The position numbers were made by a program, and so were the translations under genes. Of a stretch of DNA of 64,000 nt, positions 6,416-34,360 are shown piece after piece. The notes under the pieces were generated by a model. The model ran no database searches. It was not told where the DNA came from and saw only the letters and a program-made list of their open reading frames with translations. Position 1 is the stretch's first letter. Each line of letters starts with the position of its first letter. Location: positions 1 through 64,000 of IMG/VR virus record IMGVR_UViG_3300025162_000016; one strand, 5' to 3'.

Positions 6416-6790
6416 ATGATTAAACTAAAAGATATTTTGTTTGAGCTTATTGATAAGAATGCGATATTATATTTAGGATGGGTTAAACGCAATAACCATG
6501 ATGTTATGGGAATGGACATTCAGTCTGGGGAGGATGAGACGCATCATAATTATATGCTCGGATTGCCTCCGGAATGGAGAAATGAATTTGATAGTAATTT
6601 ATTGAGATGGAGATATCGAAAAGATATTAATATTGTCTATTGGTGGGAGTTTGGTAATCCAACCGATGACGAGAAAGAGGCGGTAGAACACTGGATTGAA
6701 AAAAAATTAAATCAAAAAAATCCTTCTCATAAAATTATTCCTACCGATAAAAATAATATGACTTTTTGGAAATCTCATGGAGAAGATTAA
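6416..6790 (+). CDS. Hypothetical protein with MIKLKDILFE N-terminal tag
   Basis: True start reassigned to ATG 6416; the upstream ORF extension lies within the mini-element. Confidence 0.7.
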   Translation: MIKLKDILFELIDKNAILYLGWVKRNNHDVMGMDIQSGEDETHHNYMLGLPPEWRNEFDSNLLRWRYRKDINIVYWWEFGNPTDDEKEAVEHWIEKKLNQKNPSHKIIPTDKNNMTFWKSHGED

Positions 6791-6808
6791 CAATGTCAAA
6801 TTTTGATG

Positions 6809-6836
6809 TTGACATTTATAGAAATTCTGCTATAGT
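6809..6836 (+). promoter_or_regulatory. sigma70-type promoter
   Basis: TTGACA(6809)-N16-TATAGT(6831) with TG extended -10. Confidence 0.7.
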
Positions 6837-6842
6837 AATTCC

Positions 6843-6971
6843 AGTTCTAATAAAATAAACAGTTGTGGGTTGACGAGTAGGTGGTGTCCACTGCGTCAAC
6901 ATTAAAACTGCAACCGAAGTGAAATTCTGTCAAAAAATCGCTTGTTTTAATATATTTTTCCGGTGAAGAAT
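6843..6971 (+). ncRNA. Candidate small structured RNA within the inverted repeat
   Basis: Follows the promoter; stem CAGTT..GTTGACG-AGT-GG[TGGTGT]CC-ACT-CGTCAAC..AACTG; no ORF; present in two copies. Confidence 0.4.
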
Positions 6972-7143
6972 ATTAATAAACATAGGTTAATTGACTAACA
7001 AAAAGATGAGAATAGAAATATTCCAGCACGGAGTTTATAGTCCCGAGTGTTTTAAAAACCTAAATTTAGCGAGAATAAATTTCAATAGAACAGGTAACTA
7101 TCTGTGGGTCAATATAGTGTTGACCATAAACAAAAAAAAATAT

Positions 7144-7422
7144 ATGAAAATTCAATCAATCATTTTAGCAGTTTTATTATCTACTAGCACTTTTGCTTTC
7201 GCACAAGATACACCTCAACCTCGCCGACAGGGACCGCCTCCCACCGTTCAATGTGAGGGAATGAAAAACTTAATGAAAGCAATGCAAGATCATAGAAAAA
7301 CATGTGAAGTCTGCAAGACCAATCCTCCTCCGAGAGGAATGTTTGGTCCACGAATGGGCGGTAAACAGGGTCAGGGTCAAGGTAGAGGTCAGGGTAGAGG
7401 TCCGCAGGGTCCGCCTTCTTGA
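7144..7422 (+). CDS. Small secreted protein, Gly/Gln/Pro-rich tail, CxxC
   Basis: Signal peptide MKIQSIILAVLLSTSTFAFA; the start could lie upstream (7006). Confidence 0.55.
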   Translation: MKIQSIILAVLLSTSTFAFAQDTPQPRRQGPPPTVQCEGMKNLMKAMQDHRKTCEVCKTNPPPRGMFGPRMGGKQGQGQGRGQGRGPQGPPS

Positions 7423-7499
7423 AAATAAGTTTTAATAGATATTTCGGGATCTGCTCAATTGACATGGGAGTATATTTGAATATTTTAACCTTCCTCCGA

Positions 7500-8709
7500 A
7501 AGAAATCCCTTTCCTTTAGGTGAGGGATGAATTTCGGAATATAATTAATAATTTTTTGATGTTTCGTATTTCTCAATCATATGTATAAGTAGAAAATGAA
7601 ATTTACTTATAAATATAGAATGTTTCCGACAAAAACCCAACAATCCATTCTAAATGGACAGTTGGAAACTTGTAGATTTCTTTATAATCATTTACTTGAA
7701 ATTAGGAAAAATGCATGGGAAAAAGAAAAAAAATCAATGTCCTGTTATGATACCCAAAATCTAATTCCTAAATTAAAAGAAGAATTTCCTCAACTCAAAT
7801 CTGTTTATTCACAAGTTCTCCAAAACGTAAATGTAAGAATTGATTTAGCATATCAAGGATTTTTTAGAAGATTGAAAAGTAATGAAAAATCTGGATATCC
7901 ACGCTTTAAAGGAAAAGGTAGATATAAATCCATTTGTTATTCACAATATGGAAATGGTTGTAAATTAGAAAAAAATAAATTATCTATTTCTAAAGTAGGA
8001 GATGTTTTCATTAAATTGCATAGACCAATTGAAGGTACACCGAAAACAGTTACTATAATAAAACAACCGACAGGTAAATGGTTCGTTTGTATTTCTTGTC
8101 AAGATGTTTCCAAAAAAATAAAGAATTTTCCCAAAACAAATAAAGAGTGTGGAATTGATGTTGGAATAACTTCGTTTGCTACTTTTGATAATGGTAATAA
8201 AATTGAAAATCCTCATTTTTTTGAAACCGAGGAAAAACAGTTATCAAAAGCACAAAATAAGGAAAAGTGGAAAGCGGTAAAAAGAATACATGAGAGGATT
8301 GGAAATAAGAGACATGAATTTCTTCATAAAATAACGAATGATATTCTTAAACAATATGATTTCATATCTATCGAAGATATTGATGTAAATTCTATTATAA
8401 GAAAAAGATGGAATAAGAAGCGGGTATATGATGTAGCGTGGAGTAATTTTGCAAACATACTTTCTCATAAAGCTGAAAATGCTGATAAGATTGTAGTAAA
8501 AATAAATCCGGCATATACTAGTCAGACATGTAGTGATTGCGGAACGAGAACAGTTATGGAAGAAAAGGATAGAATTTATAATTGTTCTTGTTGTGGGATG
8601 GTAAAAGATAGGGACGTGAATGCTGCAATAAACATTTTGAGATTGGGAACACAATCTCACGTTATTATATAACGAAGAAGCCCCTGCCTTTAGGCAGGGG
8701 AGTGTTCAC
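7500..8709 (+). mobile_element. IS200/IS605-family tnpB-only element
   Basis: Left-end hairpin ATCCCT..AGGGAT plus GAATT near 7505; right-end hairpin CCCCTGCCT/AGGCAGGGG (8681-8700) ending TTCAC at 8709. Confidence 0.8.
7596..8672 (+). CDS. tnpB: RNA-guided endonuclease TnpB (IS605 OrfB type)
   Basis: YKYRMFPT HTH; RuvC GIDVG, IEDI, DRDVNAA; CSDC/CSCC zinc finger. Confidence 0.92.
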   Translation: MKFTYKYRMFPTKTQQSILNGQLETCRFLYNHLLEIRKNAWEKEKKSMSCYDTQNLIPKLKEEFPQLKSVYSQVLQNVNVRIDLAYQGFFRRLKSNEKSGYPRFKGKGRYKSICYSQYGNGCKLEKNKLSISKVGDVFIKLHRPIEGTPKTVTIIKQPTGKWFVCISCQDVSKKIKNFPKTNKECGIDVGITSFATFDNGNKIENPHFFETEEKQLSKAQNKEKWKAVKRIHERIGNKRHEFLHKITNDILKQYDFISIEDIDVNSIIRKRWNKKRVYDVAWSNFANILSHKAENADKIVVKINPAYTSQTCSDCGTRTVMEEKDRIYNCSCCGMVKDRDVNAAINILRLGTQSHVII

Positions 8710-8724
8710 ATGCTATATATCATT

Positions 8725-9150
8725 ATGAAAAAGATATTCCATATACTTCTAGTCAGTTTAACCGTGTTTATATTAGCCGGTTGCACCACTGCTTTACAGT
8801 CAGATAAAATAATATCAATTAAAACTCGTTGTTTTGGGGTTATAATTGAAACCTCATCGATGTCTGCCAACAGTGTTCCAACAGTAAAGCTTGGATTCAT
8901 AAGTCAAGTAGTTCAATTAATTCCTACATCTACGAATGTTTTATATGCTCCAAATTATATGGACACTTTCGATCTAGGTCAGGGTATGAGTCCATTTAGC
9001 ACTACTATATCCGAAGATACCGGGACCGGTAATGTAATGTTAGATCCAGGTACCGCCACCATAATTACTACTAATAAAATGGGATTAGCTACCACTAATC
9101 ACGCTCCTTATAAATTAGGAGCAAGACTTCGCTCGCCTAAGCTGTTATAG
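8725..9150 (+). CDS. Lipoprotein of unknown function
   Basis: MKKIFHILLVSLTVFILAGC lipobox; stop codon lies inside the terminal CRISPR repeat. Confidence 0.65.
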   Translation: MKKIFHILLVSLTVFILAGCTTALQSDKIISIKTRCFGVIIETSSMSANSVPTVKLGFISQVVQLIPTSTNVLYAPNYMDTFDLGQGMSPFSTTISEDTGTGNVMLDPGTATIITTNKMGLATTNHAPYKLGARLRSPKLL

Positions 9151-9612
9151 TAACTGGTCTGTTCCAGCACTTCACCTACTGGTGCGGCGGTTGGGCATGC
9201 CGACAACAAGCGGAGGTGATATAGTAACTGGTCTGTTCCAGCACTTCACCCAAAGCAAGATTTTTATTCGCTAAAGAACAGTGTGGAGGTGATATAGTAA
9301 CTGGTCTGTTCCAGCACTTCACCCTAATATGGGCGGTCCCGCTGGGGTATCCTATGGGGTGATATAGTAACTGGTCTGTTCCAGCACTTCACCCTAATTG
9401 CATTTCCTTTTTCTCGGTATCGAACCTACGGTGATATAGTAACTGGTCTGTTCCAGCACTTCACCCATCTATGAAAGAACGCATAGTAATGAAGTTAGCG
9501 AAAGGTGATATAGTAACTGGTCTGTTCCAGCACTTCACCACGGCGTGCGCCATTTAAGGAATCCCTTAGTTTCGCCGGTGATATAGTAACTGGTCTGTTC
9601 CAGCACTTCACC
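9141..9612 (-). CRISPR. CRISPR array: 7 repeats of 36 bp, 6 spacers of 34-38 bp; no cas gene in window
   Basis: Repeat (minus strand) GGTGAAGTGCTGGAACAGACCAGTTACTATATCACC at 9141 (2 mismatches), 9215, 9288, 9358, 9430, 9504, 9577; spacers 38, 37, 34, 36, 38, 37 bp; degenerate repeat at left and promoter at right give minus orientation. Confidence 0.97.
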
Positions 9613-9668
9613 TGTGTCCCTCGTAACTATCGTATTATCAAAGAACTATGTATCAATTTGCGAGCGGT

Positions 9669-9697
9669 AGTGTATTCTATCGCCCTCGATTTGTCAA
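9669..9697 (-). promoter_or_regulatory. Array leader promoter
   Basis: Minus strand TTGACA-N17-TACACT; predicted +1 near 9662, about 50 nt before the first repeat. Confidence 0.8.
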
Positions 9698-9858
9698 CAT
9701 CAAATATCATATTTCGTAAGTTCCACATTATCAGCGAGTTACAAGTTGCGAGCGGCTATGGTATATTTGACACCACCTAACCGCTCGCAAATTAACATAA
9801 AAGTCTCATATGAGAAATCCAAAAATTGTAGACGTTTTATTTTAACCGGCATATATAT

Positions 9859-10320
9859 ATGCAGATGATTAAACTAAAAAAACTTATCGAGACCCGAGGT
9901 CTGGAAACGCAGAATGATTATTCTCGGCAAGAAAGCATTGAACTCACTGGACCTGAAGAAACCGATATTGATTATTATGACGATTTAAATAGAATGGAAA
10001 AAGAATCTGGAATTAATATTCTCAGTAACAAAGAATTGAATACTTTAGCGGTTCAAGACGAAAAGCTGGTCGGAGCCCTCTATGTTTCGATGCAGAATGA
10101 CGAATTTTCCTTTGATGTTATTGTCGATAAATTAGCTAGAGGACAAGGAATTGGAGCTAAACTTATTGATACCGCCCTTTCGCAATATCGAGAGATGAAA
10201 AATGATATGAGATTAACGTTGAAATTAGATGTGGTCAATCAATGGGTCGAAAAATATCTTCTAAAAAAAGGACTAAAAATTGTGGGAAAATACGGTACTC
10301 ATACAATAATGACAATTTAA
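9859..10320 (+). CDS. GNAT-family acetyltransferase with MIKLKKLIE tag
   Basis: VDKLARGQGIGAKLI acetyl-CoA binding motif; likely start 9865. Confidence 0.75.
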   Translation: MQMIKLKKLIETRGLETQNDYSRQESIELTGPEETDIDYYDDLNRMEKESGINILSNKELNTLAVQDEKLVGALYVSMQNDEFSFDVIVDKLARGQGIGAKLIDTALSQYREMKNDMRLTLKLDVVNQWVEKYLLKKGLKIVGKYGTHTIMTI

Positions 10321-10435
10321 TTTTTCTTGTTATTTGTAGTTGACAGAAACGACAATGTGTGTTATCAATAAAAAAAGTTTAATTGTTCCTCGTGGAACAT
10401 CTCCACGAGGAATCATATGATATATATTATAACAT

Positions 10436-10981
10436 ATGATTAGATTAAAAAATATAGTAAATGGAATATTAGCCGAGGAGGAAAAAAGTTCGGAGGATAC
10501 GGTTGCGAATAATAAAGGATATAATATAAAAAATATTTATCATGGTACAACCGAGAAATTTAATGTATTCAAGTTTGATACATTAAAAAATGTAAAAGCA
10601 TCCGATACAGATAAGGTTATATATGCTACAGATTCCGAGGAAGAAGCTAAAATCGCCGGTAGTCCTGATAGCAGTCGATCTAAGGTGATGAAATTATATG
10701 GGAAATTAAAAAATCCTATGGTGGTTGATGCTAAAGGTACAGAAAAAAATAAAAGTTTTGGAACAATTGGTTATAAAAAATTAATACAAATGGCTAAAAG
10801 TAGGAATCATGACGGTGCCATTATAAAAAATGTTATCGATTTTGGTAATACTCCACAGACGACATACATATTTTTTGATACAAAGGCAGTTAAACTCGCC
10901 GGAGAAACTAAAGATAATAGCGGCAATTTAATTCCTTTATCACAGCGATTTAATTCAACCGTAGATGATTTGCGGTTTTGA
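10436..10981 (+). CDS. ADP-ribosyltransferase-like protein (ART of polyvalent-protein type)
   Basis: IYHGT..FNVF, Y.T, LKNP and HDGAII motifs; paralogue of 30841..31380. Confidence 0.55.
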   Translation: MIRLKNIVNGILAEEEKSSEDTVANNKGYNIKNIYHGTTEKFNVFKFDTLKNVKASDTDKVIYATDSEEEAKIAGSPDSSRSKVMKLYGKLKNPMVVDAKGTEKNKSFGTIGYKKLIQMAKSRNHDGAIIKNVIDFGNTPQTTYIFFDTKAVKLAGETKDNSGNLIPLSQRFNSTVDDLRF

Positions 10982-10982
10982 A

Positions 10983-11010
10983 TTGACATTTAGGAAGAAT
11001 GTGATAGTCT
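10983..11010 (+). promoter_or_regulatory. sigma70-type promoter at the IS607 left junction
   Basis: TTGACA-N16-TAGTCT with TG extended -10. Confidence 0.6.
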
Positions 11011-11079
11011 ATTAAACATTTTAAGAGAAATATAGAAAAATATTGTAATTTGCGGAAAGTTGGTTATATTTATAACCAT

Positions 11080-11649
11080 ATGAAACTATCGAAATGGGCA
11101 AAATTGCAAGGAATAAGTTACAGAACAGCATGGTCTTGGTTTAAGAATAACACATTGCCTATTAAATCTTATCAAACTCCAACTGGAACTATTATAGTAG
11201 ATGACTCGTTGGATGTCAAAGAAAATAATAATGAAGTTGATATTTACTGTAGAGTTAGTTCCTCTAATAAAAAATTGGACTTAGACAATCAACTTAAATT
11301 ATGTGAAGAATATTGTATTTCTAATGGATACAAAATTAGAAAATCACTAAAAGAAATTGCATCGGGAATGAATGATAATCGACCAAGATTGAATTTAATT
11401 TTGGACAATCCATCAAATAAATTAGTAGTCCTTTATAAAGACAGATTAACAAGATTTGGATTTAATTATATAGAAAAACTATTAAAATCAAAAAAGTGTG
11501 AGTTGATAGTAATAAATCAAAACAAAACTGAGGAAGAGGACTTATTAAAAGACTTCATTGCTATTATTACATCGTTCTGTTGTAGAATGTATGGTGCGAG
11601 AAGAGGACAATCAAAAGCATTACGTATGAAACAGGAATTGAAAACATGA
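11080..11649 (+). CDS. tnpA: IS607 transposase (MerR-like HTH plus serine recombinase)
   Basis: MKLSKWAK..GISYRTAW HTH; YCRVSS; KDRLTRFGF. Confidence 0.93.
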   Translation: MKLSKWAKLQGISYRTAWSWFKNNTLPIKSYQTPTGTIIVDDSLDVKENNNEVDIYCRVSSSNKKLDLDNQLKLCEEYCISNGYKIRKSLKEIASGMNDNRPRLNLILDNPSNKLVVLYKDRLTRFGFNYIEKLLKSKKCELIVINQNKTEEEDLLKDFIAIITSFCCRMYGARRGQSKALRMKQELKT

Positions 11650-12890
11650 TTAGGAGTTCCAAACATTCTACAAAATTTACAAATCTTCGGAAAATGAAGA
11701 CATTGGCGTTGTTTATCTCGGAATATAGAAAAATAGGACAAGAAATTGTTGACATAATATGGAATAATGGATATGAAGAATTTAATATTCAGGAGGATAA
11801 ACTAAATTGTCCGAAATATCTCGATTATAAAAAATTCAACATAAATACATCCTTATCGGCTCGGGCATTAAGTTCTTTGGTTACACAGATATGTTTTAGT
11901 TTATCATCGGCAACAAAAAAACGAAAACAAATATTATATGCAAAGAATAAATTAATATCTGAAGGAAAGCCGCTTGGTAGAATTGATAAGATTCTCGATA
12001 AATATAAATTAATTAAACCAAATTTTTCAAACATCAATCCAGAATTGAGTTCAAAATGTTGCGATATTAAGGATGGAAATTCTTTTAATTATTTTTTAAG
12101 AATAAAATCAATAGGAAAAATATACGGATGTATTAAAATACCTATAAAAAATACAAAAGTATCATTAAAATGGTTAAAAAATGGAAAATTATTAAATTCA
12201 TTTTCTATTGGTCAGCAATATATTTCCCTACGATTTAATATTACAAATAAAAATGTAAATGTTGGAACTAAAATAATTGGAATTGATCAAGGACTGAAAG
12301 ATGTCGCAACATTATCAGACCATCAAATAACACCAAAATATGATATTCACGGGCATTCACTTGAATCAATTATAAATACGATATCAAAGAAGAAACGAGG
12401 TTCAGATGCATTTATTAAATCGCAGGAACATAGAAAAAATTTTATTAATTGGGCAATTAACCAATTAAATTTTAATGACGCCAAAGAAATTCGATTGGAA
12501 AAAATATGGAATATAGGATATAAACGGCGTACATCAAGAAGACTTTCACACTGGACGAATACGTTGATACGAGATAAGATTAAACGGAAATGCGAAGAGC
12601 TGGAGGTTCCAGTTATCGAGCAAGATTCCTCTTATCGCTCTCAACGATGTTCTTGTTGCGGATTAGTACGAAAGGCCAATAGAAATGGTAAAATATATAA
12701 ATGTAAAACTTGTAAATTTGAATCAGATGCTGATTATAATGCAAGTTTAAATCATATTGTAGATTTACCCGAAATCAGTTGGCAGTTTCGCAATCAACGA
12801 AATAATCTAAAATGTGGTTTTTACTGGAAGCCAAGTGGATTATTTAGTATTGATGGAGTGGAGCTTAGAGTCCCACTTTCTACCGATTAA
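11646..12890 (+). CDS. tnpB: IS607-associated TnpB nuclease, RuvC triad intact
   Basis: IGIDQG, IRLEKI, DADYNAS; CSCC/CKTC zinc finger. Confidence 0.88.
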   Translation: MIRSSKHSTKFTNLRKMKTLALFISEYRKIGQEIVDIIWNNGYEEFNIQEDKLNCPKYLDYKKFNINTSLSARALSSLVTQICFSLSSATKKRKQILYAKNKLISEGKPLGRIDKILDKYKLIKPNFSNINPELSSKCCDIKDGNSFNYFLRIKSIGKIYGCIKIPIKNTKVSLKWLKNGKLLNSFSIGQQYISLRFNITNKNVNVGTKIIGIDQGLKDVATLSDHQITPKYDIHGHSLESIINTISKKKRGSDAFIKSQEHRKNFINWAINQLNFNDAKEIRLEKIWNIGYKRRTSRRLSHWTNTLIRDKIKRKCEELEVPVIEQDSSYRSQRCSCCGLVRKANRNGKIYKCKTCKFESDADYNASLNHIVDLPEISWQFRNQRNNLKCGFYWKPSGLFSIDGVELRVPLSTD

Positions 12891-12986
12891 GATAATTTTC
12901 TATATTTTATCTAACTCTATTAAACAATGAATAAACTAACAGAAAAATCATGATATTAACAATAGTTAGACACCAACTATACACAT

Positions 12987-13022
12987 GGTGAAGTGCTGGA
13001 ACAGACCAGTCACTATATCACC
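12987..13022 (+). CRISPR. Solitary CRISPR repeat, inverted relative to the array
   Basis: GGTGAAGTGCTGGAACAGACCAGTCACTATATCACC; 35/36 identical to the array repeat. Confidence 0.95.
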
Positions 13023-13092
13023 AACGCATCCAGATTGTAAAAAAATGAGAGAATCGTTAGTAAACAAATAAACAAATAAAAAAATATAAATT

Positions 13093-13251
13093 ATGGGAAA
13101 TTCAAGAACAATAAAAAGAAGTATCGCCCGAAACCCAGAACGAGTATGGGTGGCTAAACAAACAGCAGCTAAACAAGAAGAAGATCGTCTTAATTCATTG
13201 AAGTCGAAGAATAACGTGGAATCTAAAGAAATATCCAAAGATTCTCTTTGA
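13093..13251 (+). CDS. Small basic hypothetical protein (52 aa)
   Basis: Open frame MGNSRTIKR..KDSL with AT-rich upstream region. Confidence 0.45.
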   Translation: MGNSRTIKRSIARNPERVWVAKQTAAKQEEDRLNSLKSKNNVESKEISKDSL

Positions 13252-13291
13252 TTTTTCAGAAAAATCAATATAGTTATACATGGTTAAAAGT

Positions 13292-13370
13292 GCGAACGTG
13301 GTACAGTGGCCGACTACGCCTTCTCTACACGGAGGAATCATCGCAGGTTCGAATCCTGCCGTTCGCACCA
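13292..13370 (+). tRNA. tRNA-Val(UAC) with atypical C33 and 7-nt variable region
   Basis: Acceptor GCGAACG/CGTTCGC-A-CCA; anticodon stem CCTTC/GGAGG, loop TCTACAC; T arm GCAGG-TTCGAAT-CCTGC. Confidence 0.8.
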
Positions 13371-13380
13371 GCTTAGTTGT

Positions 13381-13454
13381 CGGTTATAGGTGTTGCGGAA
13401 GCATACAAGTTTTGGGAACTTGTGGGGAGCGTTCAACTCGCTCATAGCCGACCA
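13381..13454 (+). tRNA. tRNA-Pro(UGG)
   Basis: CGGTTAT/ATAGCCG-A-CCA; CAAGT-TTTGGGA-ACTTG; GAGCG-TTCAACT-CGCTC. Confidence 0.9.
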
Positions 13455-13464
13455 AATTTTTGAT

Positions 13465-13535
13465 ATAGTTATCTTATAACGGTAATACGCTAGTTTTGCA
13501 GACTAGAAATCGGGGTTCGGCTCCACGGAATTTAA
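13465..13535 (+). pseudogene. Degenerate tRNA (anticodon TGC, Ala-like)
   Basis: Intact anticodon arm CTAGT-TTTGCAG-ACTAG and GGTTCG T loop, but no acceptor stem or CCA. Confidence 0.5.
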
Positions 13536-13537
13536 AT

Positions 13538-13609
13538 TGCAGTAAGGTGTAAGAGTGCATGTGACTCTCATAAGGTCACGGGCCGGTGCGAATCCGGAAT
13601 CTGCATCCA
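13538..13609 (+). tRNA. tRNA with CAU anticodon (Met or Ile2), partly mismatched stems
   Basis: TGACT-CTCATAA-GGTCA arm; TGCAG/CTGCA acceptor with 2 inner mismatches; T loop TGCGAAT; CCA end. Confidence 0.6.
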
Positions 13610-13655
13610 ATTTTGCTAAACAGCAAATATAAATAAAAAAATAGAAGTTAAAAAT

Positions 13656-14198
13656 ATGAAAAAAATGTTAAATTTGGTAGCGGTTATTGGACTTATTACA
13701 ATGTTGGGCACGGGTTGTTCTACTATTAAAACGTTGACACCGGCACAAGTGTCAATTGGAATTCAACAGACGGCTCAAATTGGTGCAACATATGCTATTC
13801 GACAAAATACCAACAATGTTAAATATTTTGTTTTAGCAGACGCAGCATTGAGTACATTTGTTTTAGGAACGGATCTGTCTCCCGCCTCATTTCAATCGGC
13901 ATTGGCAAATGTCGGATTACAGGATCAGTGGGCACAACTTGCGGTTAGTGCAGTCATTATTGCATATACCGCAACTTATAATCAATATGTCATAAATCAG
14001 GTCAATTCTAATGCGATGGCTAAAGAGTTTTTATTGGCGGTTGATAATGGATTTAAAGTAGCATTGGGAAAACCAGTTGTTCCGATGGTTCCCATTGCGC
14101 TAAAAGGCGAAAGAACGGGAGCAGTTCCTTACTTCCTTAAAGATGGGAAGATAGATAAGAATGCGATTTACACAAAAGTTTTAGTTACTAAAAGATAA
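13656..14198 (+). CDS. Lipoprotein of unknown function
   Basis: Lipobox LGTGC. Confidence 0.7.
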   Translation: MKKMLNLVAVIGLITMLGTGCSTIKTLTPAQVSIGIQQTAQIGATYAIRQNTNNVKYFVLADAALSTFVLGTDLSPASFQSALANVGLQDQWAQLAVSAVIIAYTATYNQYVINQVNSNAMAKEFLLAVDNGFKVALGKPVVPMVPIALKGERTGAVPYFLKDGKIDKNAIYTKVLVTKR

Positions 14199-14215
14199 TC
14201 TTTTCTTAATCTCAG

Positions 14216-14250
14216 ACCCCCGATCCGTCAAAAAGATCGGGGAGTTTTCA
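14216..14250 (+). terminator. Terminator-like hairpin
   Basis: CCCCGATC/GATCGGGG stem followed by T-rich sequence; boundaries approximate. Confidence 0.55.
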
Positions 14251-14292
14251 CTTCTTCGTTCTATTTATAAAGGAATACGGCGGTTTCATTTT

Positions 14293-14430: not shown

Positions 14431-14443
14431 AATATAATATCAT

Positions 14444-14932: not shown

Positions 14933-14936
14933 TTGT

Positions 14937-15062: not shown

Positions 15063-15182
15063 ATGAAATATAACCGCATTGTAATTTGGTGTGATGAATG
15101 TGATACACATCTCATCGAACCGGGTAAGAAATGTCCTAAATGTGGTCATAAGAAGGGTGATCCTAAGCGATTTAAAAAATGA
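15063..15182 (+). CDS. Small zinc-ribbon protein (39 aa)
   Basis: CDEC..CPKC. Confidence 0.55.
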   Translation: MKYNRIVIWCDECDTHLIEPGKKCPKCGHKKGDPKRFKK

Positions 15183-15856
15183 GTCATATTAAATTAAAAC
15201 ATCTTATTGAAGAGGGGTGGAGAAATAAACTCGGTGCATTGGGATTAGCGGGATCGCTATTAACTTCACCTGCATCTGCATCGCCGACCACAGGAGCACA
15301 GCATACCCATAATAAACCTGCAATAAAAAAACAAATTACAAAAGCAGTTCCTAATAAATCCGGTAAACCACCTATTGGAAAATCTAAACAGAACGTTGCT
15401 ACAAAAAAGGTTTCTAACAAAACGTCTGGTAATCCGCTTGCAGGTAAGCCGAAGCACGGTTTGGGTACAAAAGGTATCCGTAATAATAATCCCGGCAATA
15501 TTAAAAAGACAACCATTCCTTGGAAAGGAGTAGTAGGAACAGATGAAGAATTTCTTAAATTCGCAACACCGGAAGATGGTATTCGGGCAATTTCACGAAT
15601 TTTAAAAGTATATGTTACTAAATATAATTTAAATACTCCCTCACAAATTATGTCTCGCTGGGCTCCTCCAATTGAAAATCCTACTAAAAATTACATTGGG
15701 TTTGTTGCAGATAAGCTCGGAAAAAAACCAAATGATAAAATTGATATAACTAATGAAAATGAGTTTTCTAAATTAATTTCGGCTATTATTTCATTTGAAT
15801 GTGGTAGTATGCCATATGATAATGATACTATTAAACGAGGAATCAAAAAAGCATAA
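15179..15856 (+). CDS. Virion protein with lysozyme-like C-terminal domain (RNNNPGN family)
   Basis: GIRNNNPGNI, F.TPEDGIRA, RWAPP.EN motifs; N-terminal IKLKHLIEE tag. Confidence 0.55.
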   Translation: MSHIKLKHLIEEGWRNKLGALGLAGSLLTSPASASPTTGAQHTHNKPAIKKQITKAVPNKSGKPPIGKSKQNVATKKVSNKTSGNPLAGKPKHGLGTKGIRNNNPGNIKKTTIPWKGVVGTDEEFLKFATPEDGIRAISRILKVYVTKYNLNTPSQIMSRWAPPIENPTKNYIGFVADKLGKKPNDKIDITNENEFSKLISAIISFECGSMPYDNDTIKRGIKKA

Positions 15857-27098: not shown

Positions 27099-27102
27099 AA
27101 CT

Positions 27103-27606
27103 ATGGCATTTACATTACCATCGCCATCATTACCCGTGCCACAAGCGCCACCGCTACCTGCTGTTCCTAAAATATCGCTTCCAAAAGGACCGGCACCTTT
27201 AAAAATAAATACTATAACAGGAAAGGGAGTTCCTGGTGGATTTACGGGCACCAATAAATTAATACCGAAGGTAGCAGCCGCAGGAGTTGCATCTAATATA
27301 GCCGCAATTGCAGCTAAGGTATCTTCTATAAAAGCATCAATACCCGGTGCAACAGCGGCTCAAGCTAAGTTAGCGGGATTAAAAGCAAAGGCGTTATCTA
27401 AAATAAAATCATTAGCTAAAGCTCCGGATTTAAGCAGTAAATTGAAATTACCGGCTCCCCCTAAAATACCGTCGCCACCTGATTTTTCTAGTTTGAATCT
27501 TCCTTCGGTTCCTGCTTTGCCGTCAGTGCCGTCAGTGCCGTCAGTGCCTTCGGTTCCTGCTTTGCCGTCATTACCGTCAGTGCCGAAATTACCAACTATT
27601 GGGTAA
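27103..27606 (+). CDS. Pro/Ala/Lys-rich low-complexity protein
   Basis: PSV/PAL repeats. Confidence 0.55.
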   Translation: MAFTLPSPSLPVPQAPPLPAVPKISLPKGPAPLKINTITGKGVPGGFTGTNKLIPKVAAAGVASNIAAIAAKVSSIKASIPGATAAQAKLAGLKAKALSKIKSLAKAPDLSSKLKLPAPPKIPSPPDFSSLNLPSVPALPSVPSVPSVPSVPALPSLPSVPKLPTIG

Positions 27607-27633
27607 AAAAACTATATTTATAGATACACACAT

Positions 27634-28365
27634 ATGAAAAAAGACGATTTAGTAAAAATAATTCGAGCGATTGTTCAACAGGAACTCAAAAGAGAACTGC
27701 CCAAGGCGCTTGCAAATGTATTTTCCAATTTAATGGGAACTCCACCGTCAGAAGTTCGTAATATGAAGACGGCAACTCCTATTTATAAGGGACAATCATT
27801 ACCACATAAACCATCGGCGGAAGAAATGCCGGACGAAATTGATGAAACCATTCAATTAAAACAGCAACTTCGAGAAATGTTTACAGATGGGGAACCGGCG
27901 AGACGAACTGCTCCTTTGCAAACAGTTCAACCACCGAAGGTTTATACAAAAAATCCAATTTTTAATGAAATTCTAAACCAAACTCGTCCGTTTAATGGAC
28001 AAGAGAGAATGGCGATGGGAGTTGGTGGCTCGGGAATGTCGCCATCAGTTATGATGGCAGCAGAGGGATTTCAATCGTCTACCGCAGCTATGACCGGGGT
28101 CGGAGAACTCATGGATGGTAATGAATTGGGATTTTTAAATAAAGTTCCGACAATGCCAGGAGCTGGTGGTCCGGTTTTAACGGAACTTCCGATGAATGTT
28201 AATACTATACGAGAAGGACAAGTAGGCGGAGCGGCTCCACTGGACGGAGTGTTTGTTGATTCGGCATTGGATTTGAAAAATCATCCTGCGCTTCCCGATA
28301 GCATTAAAGGAATTTTAAATCGTGATTATAGATCGTTAGTTAAAGCAATGAATAAGAAGAAATAA
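27634..28365 (+). CDS. Hypothetical protein
   Basis: ORF within the baseplate cluster. Confidence 0.65.
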   Translation: MKKDDLVKIIRAIVQQELKRELPKALANVFSNLMGTPPSEVRNMKTATPIYKGQSLPHKPSAEEMPDEIDETIQLKQQLREMFTDGEPARRTAPLQTVQPPKVYTKNPIFNEILNQTRPFNGQERMAMGVGGSGMSPSVMMAAEGFQSSTAAMTGVGELMDGNELGFLNKVPTMPGAGGPVLTELPMNVNTIREGQVGGAAPLDGVFVDSALDLKNHPALPDSIKGILNRDYRSLVKAMNKKK

Positions 28366-28366
28366 T

Positions 28367-28783
28367 ATGGCAACTAGAAAAATACCACTTGGATTGATGC
28401 TCCCGATTCGAGATGGGAACAGCGGGTATTTTGATCAGGCATACGATACTTTTACACAAAAACGTATGAATATTATCAATTTACTTCGCACAAAAACGGG
28501 TGAAAGAAGATTTCAACCTACATTTGGTTCAAGGTTGTGGACTGTATTATTTGAACAGAACATGGATATCTTACCAGATATTATAACAAATATCGTGAAA
28601 GAGGATATATCTAGATGGATAGATGGAGTAATTGTAAGAAAAGTAGATATTCAAGTGCCACAAATTAGCGAAACAACTGACTATCGAGATATTTATAGTT
28701 TGTTAGTTTCAGTAATTTTTGAGGATACCGCCACTCAACAACAAGGAACCGTTGAAATTTACATTAATAGCGGCAAAATATAA
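28367..28783 (+). CDS. Baseplate wedge protein, gp25-like
   Basis: NLLRTKTGER.FQPTFGSRL..LFE. Confidence 0.85.
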   Translation: MATRKIPLGLMLPIRDGNSGYFDQAYDTFTQKRMNIINLLRTKTGERRFQPTFGSRLWTVLFEQNMDILPDIITNIVKEDISRWIDGVIVRKVDIQVPQISETTDYRDIYSLLVSVIFEDTATQQQGTVEIYINSGKI

Positions 28784-28864
28784 CTTATGGAAAAACATAC
28801 AAAAAATCGTGTCGAGTTCGGGGGTGCGGTCGAACTGATAAACAATGTATTAGGAGATTAAATT

Positions 28865-30844
28865 GTGCCGACTACCACTTCTAAAAATTTCACTCCAAAT
28901 TCTAAAGATATTCGATATCTTAATCGGGACTTTACTCAGTTAAGACAATCTCTTATGGATTTCGCCAAAACGTATTTTCCAAATACGTATAACGATTTTT
29001 CCACGGCATCTCCCGGCACGATGTTTATTGAAATGGCAGCATATGTCGGAGATGTACTTAGCTATTATACGGATTATGCATTTAAAGAAAGCATGATCCA
29101 AAACTCGACTGAGCGTAGAAATATTATATCTCTTGCGAACTATCTGGGATATAAAGTGAAACCAATTCAAGGCGCTATCGGAACCATTGAGCTTTTTCAA
29201 TTATGTCCAGCCAAAGAAAATGCGGTGGGAGTTTATGTTCCGGATACCGATTATGCACTTAGAATAAAAGAAGACATGCAAGTGTCGAATAATGCGGGGT
29301 CGTATTATGTTCTTAATGATTCGGTAGATTTTGCCGTAAGCACTTCATTATCTCCTCGAACGGATGCAGTATATTCCAGAAATCAAGATGGCACCCCACA
29401 ATTCTTTTTGCTTCAGAAAACCGGCAAGATAGCTGCGGGAAAAGTATCTACAAAAACAATTACAGTGAATTCTCCTACCCCGTTTTTTCAAATATATTTA
29501 AATGAAACTAATGTATTGGGAATAATTGATGTGGTAGACTCTAACAACAATGAATGGCATGAAGTCGATTTTCTAGCACAAGAATTAGTTCCGATTGCGA
29601 TTCCTAATGATTCGGAACATGAAGGCACATTGTCTACCTATAAAGATTCGGTTCCATATATTTTGAAGTTTTTGAGAACCCCTAATCGGTTCACTGTAAA
29701 CGTAGATTCAAATAACTTTACTTATTTAGAATTTGGAGCAGGAACAGAAGGATTTTCTGAAGAATTCGTGACATTTGATTCCAAATTAATTGGTATCGGA
29801 TTAAGAAATATTAGTAATTATAATATTCCATTTGATCCTGCTAATTTTCTTAAAAATAAAACCTATGGGGTTGCTCCATCTAACACAACATTGACGATTC
29901 GTTATTTAACGGGCGGCGGAATTAACTCAAATTCCCCCTCAAACGCAATTAGAAATGTAGTGTCAGTAGAGTTTGATAATCCAACAGATGGACTTCCTCC
30001 GGAAAAAAATAATTTATTAAATACCGTAAAAAATTCGTTGCAAGTTAATAATTCAATTGCTACAGTAGGGGGGAAAGAAGGAGAAACTGATAATGAAGTG
30101 AAAATGAATGCAACTGCTAATTTTGCCACTCAAAATCGAGCCGTAACCAAAGATGATTATTTGGTACGTATTTATTCTCTTCCTCCGAAATTCGGTTCTA
30201 TAGCAAAAGCTCAAGTAATTACTGATACCAGTTTAAACGTGGGAGTAAATAGGGTATTATCGGGAACTATAAATTCAGAAAATATTGCAACAGTAACCGA
30301 TAATGCAACTGCTAATTATTTCCGAAAAATATCATATGATTCCTCAAATCCATTTTCCATCAACATTTATTTGTTGGGATATGACGAAAATAAAAACTTA
30401 ACTCCCGTGAATTCGGCTTTGTTAACTAATCTGATTACGTATATGAAACGTTATCGGATTATGACGGATGGAGTAAATCTTATCGATGGTTATATTATTA
30501 ATATTGGAGTGAATTTTGCAATCACCGTATATAAAGGATATACGAAAAAAGATGTTTTATCGGAATGCATTCAAACTATTCAAAACTTTTTTAATATTGA
30601 TAATTGGAATTTTTCTCAACCAATCAATCTTAGTCAATTAGAATTAGAAATCGCCAAAGTCGAAGGGGTTCAATCTATAGTTAATTTAGAGATTATTAAT
30701 AAAACAACGTTAGATGGAAACTATTCTGCGGTGGAATACGATATTTCATCGGCCACCAAAAATAATATTATATATCCATCAACAGATCCTAGTTGCTGGG
30801 AAATAAAATATCCTAATAGTGATATTATAGGGAGATGTTCATGA
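28865..30844 (+). CDS. Baseplate wedge subunit (gp6/baseplate J-like)
   Basis: RDFTQLRQSL..YFP..YNDF; GGKEGET; QNRAVTKDDY. Confidence 0.85.
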   Translation: MPTTTSKNFTPNSKDIRYLNRDFTQLRQSLMDFAKTYFPNTYNDFSTASPGTMFIEMAAYVGDVLSYYTDYAFKESMIQNSTERRNIISLANYLGYKVKPIQGAIGTIELFQLCPAKENAVGVYVPDTDYALRIKEDMQVSNNAGSYYVLNDSVDFAVSTSLSPRTDAVYSRNQDGTPQFFLLQKTGKIAAGKVSTKTITVNSPTPFFQIYLNETNVLGIIDVVDSNNNEWHEVDFLAQELVPIAIPNDSEHEGTLSTYKDSVPYILKFLRTPNRFTVNVDSNNFTYLEFGAGTEGFSEEFVTFDSKLIGIGLRNISNYNIPFDPANFLKNKTYGVAPSNTTLTIRYLTGGGINSNSPSNAIRNVVSVEFDNPTDGLPPEKNNLLNTVKNSLQVNNSIATVGGKEGETDNEVKMNATANFATQNRAVTKDDYLVRIYSLPPKFGSIAKAQVITDTSLNVGVNRVLSGTINSENIATVTDNATANYFRKISYDSSNPFSINIYLLGYDENKNLTPVNSALLTNLITYMKRYRIMTDGVNLIDGYIINIGVNFAITVYKGYTKKDVLSECIQTIQNFFNIDNWNFSQPINLSQLELEIAKVEGVQSIVNLEIINKTTLDGNYSAVEYDISSATKNNIIYPSTDPSCWEIKYPNSDIIGRCS

Positions 30845-31380
30845 TTAAATTGAAAGTATTATTATTTGAAGGTATGACTGATACTCCTGAATTCAAGCAA
30901 TGGTTTGGACAGAGTAAAGTTGTGGATGAACATGGACAACCAAAAGTAGTGTATCACGGAACATCAAAAAGTAGAGATTTTTCAAAATTCAATAAAAAAG
31001 GAGGGGGCTCTTGGTTTACTTCTAGCAAAGAAGAAGCTTCTAAGTATGCAGAACGTAACGATTTTAGCGATATCAGGGGGCACGATGAACATGGAGTTCC
31101 ATATGGGAGTAATGTAAGCAGTAGAATATATCCGGTTTACCTTAAAATAGAAAATCCCAAATTACTTACATCAAAGGAAATTGAATGGTGGAGACATCAA
31201 AAGGATTATCGTAGCGCCAACAAAGAACTTTTAGCTAGAGCATTTGCCGCAGGACACGATGGTATTGATATGGGTAATGGTAATTACGTTGTTCACAAGC
31301 CGGAACAAATCAAATCAGCAATAGGCAATAAAGGAATGTTTGATCCTAAACATCCAGATATAACCAAAGAAACTATTTAA
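30841..31380 (+). CDS. ADP-ribosyltransferase-like protein with MIKLKVLLFE tag
   Basis: VVYHGT..FSKF, WFTS, YLKIENP, GHDGI motifs. Confidence 0.6.
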   Translation: MIKLKVLLFEGMTDTPEFKQWFGQSKVVDEHGQPKVVYHGTSKSRDFSKFNKKGGGSWFTSSKEEASKYAERNDFSDIRGHDEHGVPYGSNVSSRIYPVYLKIENPKLLTSKEIEWWRHQKDYRSANKELLARAFAAGHDGIDMGNGNYVVHKPEQIKSAIGNKGMFDPKHPDITKETI

Positions 31381-31381
31381 A

Positions 31382-34051
31382 ATGCATCACCACCTATTTC
31401 CAGAATCGGATACATATGTAACGAATGAATCCGGATTCGAAGATAAAAATTTCGGTATAAATGAAATTCTTCGAATTGGAACTTCTACTTCTCCCATGCG
31501 AGTTTTAGAAGACACGAAAGATTATCCTTATTCAAATGTGATATGGACGAATCATTGTATCACAAATTTTACGGGAATCTTAACTGGTTCTTTTTCCGGT
31601 GCAGCGGAGTCTGTATACGGAACAATTATAGCCTCCGCTTCATTTAGTTCTTCTTATTTCAATGGATATTTCGATGGGGTTTTAGTAGAATCCAGCGGAG
31701 GGTTTTCGGGAAGTGTGGATGGAATTGTTTCCGGTTCTTTAACTGCATCCGTGTTTCCAAATTTCGATGGACAATTAACAAGTTCTTATGGAAAAATTAC
31801 AGGAACGGTAACCGGAATAGATACTAGAAATGAAAATCATTGGGTAACTACTGCAACTAAATTAGTTGATAGAACTATAATTAAATTCGATTTAAATACT
31901 ATTTCCGCTTCGGTTGCCAATGGAGAAATTACAAATCCGGAATTTAAATTAAATTTAAAAGTGTGTAATGAATATGAATTACCGATTTCATATGCTATTT
32001 ATGCGTTTCCAGTAAGTCAAAGTTGGGTGATGGGAAATGGTTATTTTTCTGATGGAGGATCTTATACCGGAGCCAGTTGGTATTATCGAGATTACGTTGC
32101 AGGGACGGCATGGTATGCTCCTATTACTACTAGTTTAAGACCAGTCGTTGATTTTTTTAACACCGAAAGTAACGCAACTGCATCTTTTGCATATGGCGGA
32201 GGAACTTGGTATTACGATTCAGCGTCAAAACAAGATTTCTCATATGAATCCGCCGATATTTCGATGGATGTTACAGATATTGTAATGACATGGATAAACG
32301 GAACACTTCCAAATAATGGATTCATTTTGATGTCATCGGATGAAATAGTGGCCAGTGGTTCCGGATTCGCTTTAACGTTTTATAGTAAAGACACCAATTC
32401 CATAAATTCACCATACCTCGATGTAATGTGGAGTGATTGGATAGGAGAATCTGGAAGTGTTGATATATCTAGCGCAAATATAATAACGCCCTATCTCGGC
32501 CTTTCGGGAGAGGTGCAAAATGGGTCGTCGTTATCCGGAAATTCGATTTTATCAGGAGGTTCAACAAATGCAAGTCAACTTAGTGGGAGTTTTTCCGGCA
32601 GTTCATTGGTTAATTTTACTTTGAATTATATTACGGCTAGTAATGCACCGGTAAATAACTTATGTGTATTTCAATTTACGGGAAGTTTAACGGGGTCTTT
32701 TTTAGGAACAGCTTCTTATGCTTTAGGAATAATTTCCGGAGGTATCGTGGATTTTTATACAGATTATTTTACCGGAAATATTGATGGCACTCCTTCCACA
32801 ATAACAAGCGGAAAAGTATTAAGTAATTCTTCTGTTTTAGGATCAATTACGGGCTCGGTAATTACTAGCACATATCTCGGGGATTTTTCCGGATCAATAA
32901 CGAGTTCAAATCTGTATATATCGGGGGGTGTATCTGGCACATACTTAGATACTATATTCCATAATTTCAATGGATTTTTTGCATGTAACGGGTTTACCGG
33001 AAATATAAGCGGAGTTCCAGTTATAGGCAACGTTCAGGGATTGATTACTATAGATCCAGCTTCGGTATATACCCCAACGGACATGACAACGCTGTATCCG
33101 AGCATGCCGTATAATCAATCTCCCTACTCCACGGGATATCAAAATCTTTATTCGGATTCACCTTATAATGGACTTATAAATGTCTGGTATACATGGATGG
33201 GAGACACTTGGACGTCGAATGTGCCGGCATATCCAACCTATCCAATAACCACTTCCTGTGGGAATATTCCTCATCAAGCGCAAACTATGATGGGCACTCT
33301 TACTAGTGGCGTTTTTAGTGGAAGTCATTTTGTAGCATATTATTCAAACTATTCAATTCTTATTGGATCTTTACAAGGATTTTATACAACAGAGGCATTA
33401 CTTAATTCAACCGTAACTATTCCTCTCCCATCCGGTATAGATCCATATGCATATGCATACTTCACCGGAACATATGTCAATGGGACGGCAATGGGACTTT
33501 ATAATTTATATCCCAACAGTCATGATAGCTCTAGTTTTACTGGTCAATTTATAAATGGAGAACTTTTGGGTAGCTATGTTACTATACAATTAAGCGGAAG
33601 TATGTATACTTCAAGTTATTCTTATACGGGAAGTGTAAATTATACCTCCAACACATTTAAGCAACTTGATACTAATAGTCCATTTACGGTGATTGTAAAG
33701 AATCTCAAACCTACTATTAAAAGCGGAGATTTAATTCAAGTAAATGTATTTGGAAGACAAGAATTTCCTCTTAAAACATTTGAAAAGACATCACAACAAT
33801 CAGAATATGTTATTCCTAAATTGTTGCCATCGGCATCATATTATGCAATTAAAGATAATATGAGTGAGGAAATGATTATTGATTTCGATCGGTTTACGCA
33901 AATTAGTTCAAAGTATCCAAACGGAAACTTTTTCGTATTAGATACCACTGGATTAGCGCAAGAAAGATCGTATCGGGTGTTAATACGAATACATAACAGT
34001 TCCTCTATTTATACATTTGATGATAACAATGTATTTAAAATAACAAGATAA
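31382..34051 (+). CDS. Large structural protein (Ser/Gly-rich insert)
   Basis: Located in the structural module; YSKDT..SPYL motif. Confidence 0.55.
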   Translation: MHHHLFPESDTYVTNESGFEDKNFGINEILRIGTSTSPMRVLEDTKDYPYSNVIWTNHCITNFTGILTGSFSGAAESVYGTIIASASFSSSYFNGYFDGVLVESSGGFSGSVDGIVSGSLTASVFPNFDGQLTSSYGKITGTVTGIDTRNENHWVTTATKLVDRTIIKFDLNTISASVANGEITNPEFKLNLKVCNEYELPISYAIYAFPVSQSWVMGNGYFSDGGSYTGASWYYRDYVAGTAWYAPITTSLRPVVDFFNTESNATASFAYGGGTWYYDSASKQDFSYESADISMDVTDIVMTWINGTLPNNGFILMSSDEIVASGSGFALTFYSKDTNSINSPYLDVMWSDWIGESGSVDISSANIITPYLGLSGEVQNGSSLSGNSILSGGSTNASQLSGSFSGSSLVNFTLNYITASNAPVNNLCVFQFTGSLTGSFLGTASYALGIISGGIVDFYTDYFTGNIDGTPSTITSGKVLSNSSVLGSITGSVITSTYLGDFSGSITSSNLYISGGVSGTYLDTIFHNFNGFFACNGFTGNISGVPVIGNVQGLITIDPASVYTPTDMTTLYPSMPYNQSPYSTGYQNLYSDSPYNGLINVWYTWMGDTWTSNVPAYPTYPITTSCGNIPHQAQTMMGTLTSGVFSGSHFVAYYSNYSILIGSLQGFYTTEALLNSTVTIPLPSGIDPYAYAYFTGTYVNGTAMGLYNLYPNSHDSSSFTGQFINGELLGSYVTIQLSGSMYTSSYSYTGSVNYTSNTFKQLDTNSPFTVIVKNLKPTIKSGDLIQVNVFGRQEFPLKTFEKTSQQSEYVIPKLLPSASYYAIKDNMSEEMIIDFDRFTQISSKYPNGNFFVLDTTGLAQERSYRVLIRIHNSSSIYTFDDNNVFKITR

Positions 34052-34054
34052 CCT

Positions 34055-34360
34055 ATGATTTATTTAAAAAATTTAATTTCGAAAGTTCTAAATGAAGGAG
34101 TGTTATCTAAATTGGTAAGTATACCAGACCCTCTTAAACAAAAACTAGGAACTGTTATTGCCAAATGGTATTCTGATAAACGTTCACAAGAACAATCGGG
34201 AAAATTGTTGCCGAGTCTGGGAGTTCGGCTGGAAAAAATAAAAGTCACTGTCGAGAAACTTGGATTTACTAAACATCGAGACATGACTGGCGCAACTGAA
34301 ATTGAATTAGCTATAGATATGTTATATCGTTTTCATATGAGGCAATCAAAAAATGTATGA
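34055..34360 (+). CDS. Hypothetical protein with MIYLKNL..NE tag
   Basis: ORF track; N-terminal motif. Confidence 0.55.
   Translation: MIYLKNLISKVLNEGVLSKLVSIPDPLKQKLGTVIAKWYSDKRSQEQSGKLLPSLGVRLEKIKVTVEKLGFTKHRDMTGATEIELAIDMLYRFHMRQSKNV

Follow-up and report, generated by a model that had tools for sequence, protein, structure and literature searches.

Proteins injected together with phage DNA are at work before the phage's own genes are switched on, which makes them prime candidates for a role in counter-defence and host takeover. They are hard to recognize from sequence alone. To our knowledge, the sole common mark of the injected proteins of T-even phages is the capsid targeting sequence (CTS). 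We have analysed a stretch of DNA of 64,000 nucleotides (hereafter the window) comprising the first 64 kb of the 368,758-bp IMG/VR virus record IMGVR_UViG_3300025162_000016, the whole record being denoted G000. Otherwise unrelated small proteins of this phage begin with a common leader, MIKLKxhhxE (x, any residue; h, Ile or Leu), and we think it likely that this is a CTS of a different sequence.

In phage T4 the internal proteins (IPs) IPIII and IPII begin MKTYQEFIAE. The mutagenesis of Mullaney and Black, as reviewed, assigns targeting mainly to residues 4 and 7 and processing to residues 8 and 10, with the cut after Glu10 (PMC9026906). A short CTS shared by diverse internal proteins and removed by gp21 has been known in T-even phages since 1996, and has been described as a likely general device of T4-like phages (PMC9026906). 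The MIKLKxhhxE leader resembles it in several respects. Both are ten-residue N-terminal leaders on unrelated small proteins, the cargo is diverse and of fast turnover in both, and both genomes encode a gp21-type S77 protease. Leu4, Ile7, Leu8 and Glu10 of the leader correspond to a pattern found in both, hydrophobic at 4 and 7, aliphatic at 8 and Glu at 10, and residue 6 is acidic too. The two systems differ in that there are 14 carriers here compared with three IPs in T4, and in that our leader persists throughout a clade whose capsid proteins diverge to as little as 48% identity. The cargo here, known from sequence alone, comprises largely recognizable enzymes, whereas that of T4 consists of small basic proteins.

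T4 Alt offers a second comparison. Like two proteins encoded in the window it is an ADP-ribosyltransferase (ART) with a short N-terminal propeptide, a gene beside baseplate genes and a presumed delivery with the DNA. Alt, at ~75 kDa, is a member of the R-S-E Alt/VIP2 clade, whereas the window ARTs are ART-PolyVal (PF18760) proteins of 179-181 amino acids (aa); Alt's leader is moreover unlike the IP CTS. Alt-type ART genes adjoin baseplate genes, as would suit proteins that are made late and packaged, and ART-PolyVal was defined as a domain occurring in proteins that are believed to enter the cell with the DNA (Iyer et al. 2017, PMC5512222). The polyvalent proteins described there have the same domain repertoire as the leader-bearing proteins (ART-PolyVal, acetyltransferase, peptidoglycan hydrolases, and enzymes acting on nucleotides or nucleic acids) and the same proposed role as effectors injected with DNA, but they carry 2-15 domains on each giant polypeptide, whereas here the set is 'unbundled' into separate small proteins, each with the leader (PMC5512222). 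In the phiKZ-like phages SPN3US, phiKZ and 201phi2-1, N-terminal propeptides are removed by a T4-related prohead protease at x-x-Glu, and paralogous ejection proteins share identical N-termini (PMC5694885). The mature form of SPN3US gp47 begins with a transmembrane segment, as we predict for the product of gene 15179 of the window. The phiKZ-like propeptides are mostly >100 residues long and end in (A/S/G)-x-E (PMC5694885), whereas here there are 10 residues, with an aliphatic residue at P3 as in T4.

An N-terminal leader on unrelated proteins

In a six-frame search of the whole genome, the leader M-I-K-L-K-x-(I/L)-(L/I)-x-E opens 14 otherwise unrelated small open reading frames (ORFs), named here by the position of their starts. 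Six lie inside the window, all on the + strand, and eight outside, to which is added a repeat copy of gene 6416. The first-pass annotation had listed six such N-termini in the window, and all are present in the sequence; its domain guesses (GNAT for 9865, ART for 10436 and 30841, lysozyme-like for 15179) agree with the profile matches that we obtain (Table 1). The six frames of the unique genome contain the strict pattern MIKLK.[IL][IL] 11 times, compared with 0 occurrences in 30 order-3 Markov simulations. When the genome was scanned with a position-specific scoring matrix (PSSM), the 14 members scored 17.4-26.6, and the next-best site, at 15.5, was internal or not in an ORF. All 14 top matches come straight after the start Met, or after MSH in the case of 15179. 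The sequence [LIV]-x-E is found within residues 8-15 in 12 of the 14 proteins.

The leader is strictly N-terminal and selected at the protein level. Conservation at this level follows from the DNA, because the regions upstream of the tagged genes are not conserved and the Ile, Leu, Lys and Asp codons of the leader vary synonymously. No late-promoter motif common to the tagged genes was found in these upstream regions. The 14 carriers are drawn from ~490 crudely called ORFs of the genome. Their products are 90-296 aa in length with at most one Pfam domain each; separately, 281880 has 35 aa.

Other N-termini also recur in this genome. MNNKLIND, MNDII and MNWGRM were considered as tags and rejected, since they belong to paralogues of a repeat-protein family and not to unrelated cargo; these form a tandem array of >20 small ORFs of xQVxSQV repeats (G000 337100-349400, +). 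Possible divergent leaders below the gap in the motif scan are MQLTLKNILLE at 265338(-), MIIKESQFKELLGHLVKE at 155963(+) and MIIKLNEIKSVIRELLLE at 354529(+), the last on a protein of 699 aa that has a DUF4476 domain and resembles ankyrin repeats below threshold (18.9 bits vs a cut-off of 27.3). The head module contains further starts of like build at 70691 (MDKIKFQSLVRE), 74309 (MKKQYLKQLIQE) and 98025 (MKKSQLKELVRE).

Spread of the leader and diversity of its cargo

The leader is common to unrelated cargo well outside this genome. IMG/VR was scanned with back-translated MIKLKDIL only, so that residues 9 and 10 lay outside the query. At least 118 loci were found, with nearly all matches at ORF starts, and 111 of the 128 matches listed (87%) continue with x-Glu to give MIKLKDILxE. 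The same pattern was sought as a control in 596 Gb of bacterial and archaeal genomes, where Glu10 is present in 11 of the 120 matches listed (Fisher p = 3e-38). The control matches are mostly short or internal frames, and several of the 11 with Glu10 are phage contigs binned into metagenome-assembled or single-cell genomes. A second scan of IMG/VR, with residue 6 free, gave the order D > N > K, S, E, H, T, Q among the matches listed. The two scans combined provide at least 180 distinct tagged ORFs, of which 168 of 180 have no upstream in-frame ATG. A scan of the genome and its relatives had been proposed as a check in the first-pass annotation, and it has been productive in both.

On removal of the leader, the 160 complete tagged ORFs of the combined sample fall into 85 unrelated BLASTP clusters. 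When 63 representatives of these clusters are aligned, the conservation is confined to residues 1-8. Pfam families among the relatives' cargo include phage lysozymes, M23 peptidase, cell-wall hydrolase, NUDIX, RNase T, RimK-type ATP-grasp, 2H/Acb1-like phosphoesterase, Zeta-toxin-like kinase and 5'-nucleotidase. A tblastn search of cultured phages with a single cargo protein of one relative (G002) returned only an unrelated Mycobacterium phage match. The median pI of the mature parts is 9.0 in the relatives and 7.65 in the window phage's own set, compared with 7.1 for the genome; the tendency to a basic charge, as in the T4 IPs, is only weak, and we have not used it as evidence.

The relatives' DNA (n = 128) varies in the same manner as that of the window phage. 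Ile2 is encoded by ATT 61, ATA 56 and ATC 11 times and Asp6 by GAC 82 and GAT 46 times, Leu4 and Leu8 each use six codons, and no upstream position carries more than 0.5 bit.

Phages that carry the leader

The leader is confined to one T4-like clade that has the S77 protease. All four large tag-bearing contigs (145-166 kb) encode Peptidase_S77, with 1, 10 (as MIKFK), 3 and 4 tags. The protease of the contig with 10 tags has 62% identity to that of Flavobacterium phage immuto, 60% to that of Microcystis phage Mel-JY01 and 42% to those of cyanomyophages. Each of the seven tag-bearing contigs with a capsid gene has 48-59% identity to the window phage's capsid protein; the three without one are fragments that are 24-41% complete.

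By its gene content, the window phage is itself a distant member of the T4 superfamily, a placement that follows from its gp21-type S77 protease, Gp23-type capsid protein, T4-type portal and gp25- and gp6-like baseplate genes. The cultured phages nearest by capsid protein are Mel-JY01 (52.5% identity) and immuto (52%). Rhodothermus phage RM378 is more remote (38%), as are T4, cyanomyophages and HTVC008M (~28-30%).

Mel-JY01 is the only tag-bearing cultured phage among those searched with the pattern. It has 3 matches, two of them on ART-like paralogues (MIKLKSLLQE and MIKLKSLLKE). The pattern gave no tags in T4, Vibrio phage nt-1, Pelagibacter phage HTVC008M, Methylophilales phage Melnitz, RM378, immuto or the uncultured 484-kb LR756508. 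Immuto repeats other leaders of like build (MKKSQLRQIIKE, MENFDLKKFLVE and MKLDLLKKLIKE), one of them with the pattern MKKSQL(R/K)xII(K/R)E, and one of its repeated leaders sits on a small gene between portal and protease.

Leader exchange and the cleavage-site motif

Homologous cargo carries different leaders in different phages. Homologues of the 30841 ART in metagenomic phages share the core TPEFKQWFGNSKVVD...YHGT, and the leaders before it differ. Those of ART-PolyVal homologues include MIKLKSILLE, MKTFKQYLQE (which is close to that of T4), MRYSEIVTE, MRYHEILYE, MKINEIFE and MKSILLE, among others. Each ends in hydrophobic-x-Glu, a few residues ahead of a conserved core (TPEFKQWFG); many high-GC ART homologues have no such leader. 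Similarly, the homologue of 100430(-) in Vibrio phage nt-1 begins MTIIFE, and its neighbour begins MIEFLTE. The presence of differing leaders on the same cargo across lineages indicates that the leader is a swappable, lineage-specific module.

The capsid proteins of the clade contain a similar motif. That of the window phage reads ...NQAKQLIE-E followed by SSVTG, that of Mel-JY01 ...KQLISE followed by AN, and that of immuto ...KQIVSE followed by AN. This NQAKQ(L/I)(I/V)xE(S/A) site lies near the aligned N-terminus of T4 gp23*, 12-13 residues downstream of its gap-free projection. Because of this conserved motif at such a position, the clade's capsid maturation site is probably hydrophobic (aliphatic)-x-Glu too. 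A structure prediction of the S77 protease of one tag-bearing relative (G004) with the first 40 residues of one of its tagged proteins gave a score of 0.00, which counts neither way.

The tagged genes and their genomic setting

Coordinates are collected in Table 1. No usable match came from Pfam or PHROGs for 6416, 34055, 97475, 247438, 281546, 295022 or 295768. Of the eight tagged ORFs outside the window, those other than 99538(-) and 100430(-), 281880 included, fall into no family. The leader of 10436 is divergent and longer (MIRLKNIVNGILAE), with EE after the predicted cut. In 15179 the leader MSHIKLKHLIE is followed by the predicted cut and EGWRNKLGALGLAGSLLTSPASA, and a hydrophobic segment lies between leader and enzymatic domain.

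Table 1. Positions of the leader-bearing genes and of the T4-type head and baseplate genes (window positions equal G000 positions).
Feature	Position	Strand	Length (aa)	N-terminus	PSSM score	Assignment
Tagged gene 6416	6416..6790	+	124	MIKLKDILFE then L	26.6	Cargo without Pfam or PHROG family
Tagged gene 9865	9865..10320	+	151	MIKLKKLIE then T	20.2	GNAT acetyltransferase; PF00583 3.5e-7, PF13673, PF13508; phrog_1249 acetyltransferase
Tagged gene 10436	10436..10981	+	181	MIRLKNIVNGILAEE	17.4	ART-PolyVal ADP-ribosyltransferase; PF18760 8e-10, phrog_21376
Tagged gene 15179	15179..15856	+	225	MSHIKLKHLIEE	25.0	Transglycosylase/lysozyme-type domain, residues 84-225; phrog_873 6.6e-44; phrog_992 head protein; phrog_7182 tail injection transglycosylase
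Tagged gene 30841	30841..31380	+	179	MIKLKVLLFE then GMTDTPEFKQWFG	23.9	ART-PolyVal; PF18760 4e-20
Tagged gene 34055	34055..34360	+	101	MIYLKNLISKVLNE then G (divergent leader)	17.9	Cargo with only a sub-threshold NYN match
Tagged ORF 97475	97475 (start)	+				
Tagged ORF 99538	99538 (start)	-				Sub-threshold ART match
Tagged ORF 100430	100430 (start)	-				phrog_16075
Tagged ORF 247438	247438 (start)	+				
Tagged ORF 281546	281546 (start)	+				
Tagged ORF 281880	281880 (start)	+	35			
Tagged ORF 295022	295022 (start)	-				
Tagged ORF 295768	295768 (start)	-				
gp25-like baseplate wedge gene	28367-28783	+				phrog_261/43
gp6-like baseplate wedge gene	28865-30844	+				phrog_10646/219
gp20/T4-type portal	G000 66664-69723		1019			
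Peptidase_S77 (gp21-type) prohead protease	G000 71400-72503					PF03420 above cut-off
Gp23-type major capsid protein	G000 91282-93000					PF07068 above cut-off

The context of the tagged genes fits late synthesis and head assembly, as judged from four placements. The late structural operon with the gp25-like and gp6-like genes (28367-30844, +) continues into 30841, the start of which overlaps the stop of the gp6-like gene, and the two are translationally coupled. Gene 34055 is embedded in the same baseplate/tail operon. The three genes 97475, 99538(-) and 100430(-) lie 4.5 kb past the capsid gene. In the relative G001 the protease gene is followed by a 285-aa basic ORF and then by genes beginning MIKLKDILLE and MANIKLKDLLNE. 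These two lie within the head module, 1-1.3 kb past the protease gene, and the product of the MANIKLKDLLNE gene is an acidic protein that, from its composition, looks like a scaffold.

The record ends in an exact direct terminal repeat of 7,102 bp, window 1-7102 being identical to G000 361657-368758, and the unique genome is thus 361,656 bp, with 35.8% G+C. The repeat holds lipoprotein-like genes and the tagged gene 6416, which for this reason is present twice in the record, with its second copy at 368072. A hairpin repeat, GGAAACCCAC..CTTTAG..GGGTGGGTAGTTCAT, has four copies (window 6381-6404; G000 140547-140593, 190443-190466(-) and 295782-295805(-)), two of them directly 5' of the tagged genes 6416 and 295768(-), and may be a terminator or an RNA-processing site. 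The start at 6416 is likelier than the listed one at 6362, because a gene starting at 6362 would read through this hairpin.

The genome also contains mobile elements and putative inteins. Genes for TnpB (IS605 OrfB/Cas12f-like) and pairs of IS607-type resolvase and TnpB occur at window 7596-8672, 11050-12890 and 59694-59876, with further TnpB/IS607-type loci at G000 76127-77946 and 82378-83514(-); two such elements flank the tagged GNAT (9865) and ART (10436) genes. A papain-like protease at window 741-2459 contains an intein with an HNH endonuclease. The portal is much longer than the 617-621 aa of relatives and has three Intein_splicing stretches. The prohead protease is 367 aa, vs 193-221 aa in relatives, and its insertion, which begins CLTQSGQILT directly after ELDHPDS, is putatively of intein type (Intein_splicing 25 bits, below cut-off). 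An HNH homing endonuclease gene (72598-74292) splits the head module between the protease and capsid genes, and at least 7 paralogous ORFs beginning MKTRNGFVSNSSSSSF also lie between these genes (G000 79177-85127, +). An 812-aa ORF with NUDIX and thymidylate-kinase-like regions (G000 95044-97482, +) has a stop that overlaps the start of the tagged 97475. In relatives, a gene for ribosomal protein S21 is found in the head-gene module shortly past the prohead protease (G001, L138 2533-2760; Mel-JY01, L158 9182-9409).

Discussion

We consider that the MIKLKxhhxE leader is likely a clade-specific CTS that is cleaved after Glu10 and that loads enzymes into the head for injection. On this explanation the tagged proteins would be made late, alongside the structural proteins. 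The leader would bind the scaffolding core of the assembling prohead, and the protein would be enclosed as the gp23-type shell forms. The gp21-type S77 prohead protease would then cut after Glu10 (P3 aliphatic, P1 Glu), so that the leader is freed and the mature enzyme stays behind with the packaged DNA. On infection the enzymes would exit with the DNA and act first, by ADP-ribosylation and acetylation of host proteins and local cleavage of peptidoglycan. Core binding, cleavage, presence in the virion, ejection and the cellular targets are what we infer from the sequences and from the T4 precedent.

Several observations weigh against this explanation. No virion proteome of a tag-bearing phage was found in the open literature searched, and a search there for Mel-JY01 found no paper. 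Only two of the ten residues (M1 and E10) are identical to those of the T4 CTS, and the leader cannot be aligned with it as a homologue. Two of the phage's own members, 247438 and 281880, have no nearby Glu. The NUDIX, nucleotidase and ATP-grasp cargo of the relatives is not obviously that of injected effectors. Finally, the relatives favour one codon at each of two residues (Ile7, ATA in 120 of 128; Lys5, AAA in 118 of 128), a bias that may reflect a minor RNA-level contribution, a nucleotide-level constraint or recent common descent. In full-text literature searches, no paper contained the string MIKLKD, MIKLK was found only as part of the cholera toxin B signal peptide in vaccine-design papers, and no paper was found with the literal T4 CTS string.

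The same codon bias could be expected if the leader worked at the level of mRNA, with an A/U-rich unstructured coding start (AUG AUU AAA UUA AAA GAU AUA ...) boosting initiation in hosts that make little use of Shine-Dalgarno sequences; the leader codons are indeed A/T-rich, and the nearest cultured relatives infect Flavobacterium and Microcystis. However, the codons of Ile2, Leu4, Asp6 and Leu8 vary synonymously, upstream positions are nearly without information (≤0.5 bit each), and Glu10 is kept at 87% in the matches listed, beyond a variable residue 9. The quite different leaders of other lineages on the same cargo share only their hydrophobic-x-Glu end, and the leader is used by 14 of ~490 crudely called ORFs. 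We therefore regard an mRNA-level function as very improbable. The leader could also be a passive trace left by recombination, in which the short conserved start of the gene serves as a crossover point and the peptide has no function. Tagged genes are often in accessory-gene clusters and in the window are flanked by TnpB/IS607 elements, and the IP loci of T-even phages are hyperplastic regions. Yet 24-30 nucleotides with freely varying synonymous sites would be a poor recombination substrate, the amino acids are conserved across capsid divergence down to 48% identity, and Glu10 is kept while residue 9 is free, so that we give this idea equally little credence. That the tag directs the proteins to the envelope of the infected cell, as an export or membrane-targeting signal, is scarcely credible. 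The product of 15179 does have a hydrophobic stretch and an ASA motif past the tag, and several of the relatives' cargos are cell-wall hydrolases. But the tag is charged (K3, K5, D6, E10) and has no hydrophobic core, unlike a Sec or lipoprotein signal peptide, in which a positive n-region precedes an uncharged hydrophobic stretch of about 7-15 residues; true lipoprotein signals of the window, such as those of 207, 5295 and 13656, differ from it. Most cargos (ART, GNAT, NUDIX, nucleases) act in the cytoplasm, and the hydrophobic segment of 15179 is separate, lies past the predicted cut and resembles that of SPN3US gp47. These three explanations are contradicted by the synonymous variation, by a Glu10 that is kept although residue 9 is free, and by the exchange of leaders on homologous proteins.

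Harder to separate from a CTS is a propeptide that the prohead protease, or a different protease, removes for some purpose other than head targeting. It might be a zymogen lock, as active ARTs and an active transglycosylase would harm the producing cell, or an address to the baseplate or tail lumen, given that the tagged 30841 and 34055 lie in the baseplate operon. Against the former, ten residues a few positions before a catalytic core are unlikely to block an active site. Against the latter, T4 alt-type genes adjoin baseplate genes, yet Alt is a head protein, and in G001 the tagged genes follow the protease gene within the head module. The T4 S77 protease works inside proheads, and a 10-residue CTS suffices for head targeting (PMC9026906). 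The head-module context and the T4 precedent favour a CTS over such a propeptide, which we consider unlikely.

The first-pass annotation had proposed a modular loading tag of the T4 CTS type. Its T4 background is correct according to the literature, both in that the CTS of internal proteins is cleaved after Glu and in that Alt is injected. The modular tag itself is supported by the comparative tests (the S77 protease, the x-Glu ending, the 85 clusters, the leader swap and the gene context), while packaging, cleavage and injection are inferred. The ARTs, the GNAT and the transglycosylase may plausibly be labelled host-takeover or anti-defence enzymes, and about half of the cargo has no recognizable function; the label is read from the ARTs and the GNAT together with the wall hydrolases and the Acb1-like match, and should be treated as conditional.

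What is new here is a different leader sequence, conserved in a separate and largely uncultured clade, the number of its carriers (14 in this genome, with at least 85 cargo families), and polyvalent-like cargo in the form of single-domain proteins. The genomes of the clade range from 145 to 362 kb. There is perhaps an even chance that MIKLKxhhxE is a portable, clade-wide packaging address of a large, mostly uncultured group of aquatic T4-like phages, so that a string search would read out their repertoire of injected effectors. If so, that repertoire would comprise at least 85 unrelated families, most without known function, and the polyvalent domain set would have been unbundled into separately addressed small proteins. 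A leader that functionally matches the CTS would be a simple sequence handle for listing candidate injected effectors in metagenomes. The enzyme families that carry it number in the dozens, with ADP-ribosyltransferases, an acetyltransferase, wall hydrolases, enzymes acting on nucleotides and an Acb1-like phosphoesterase among them. It would amount to a ready-made catalogue of first-minute host-takeover and anti-defence factors. It would also be a natural protein-delivery tag for non-model phages, and a candidate for loading foreign proteins into the capsids of phages of Bacteroidota or cyanobacteria. The CTS principle would then reach well beyond the T-even phages.

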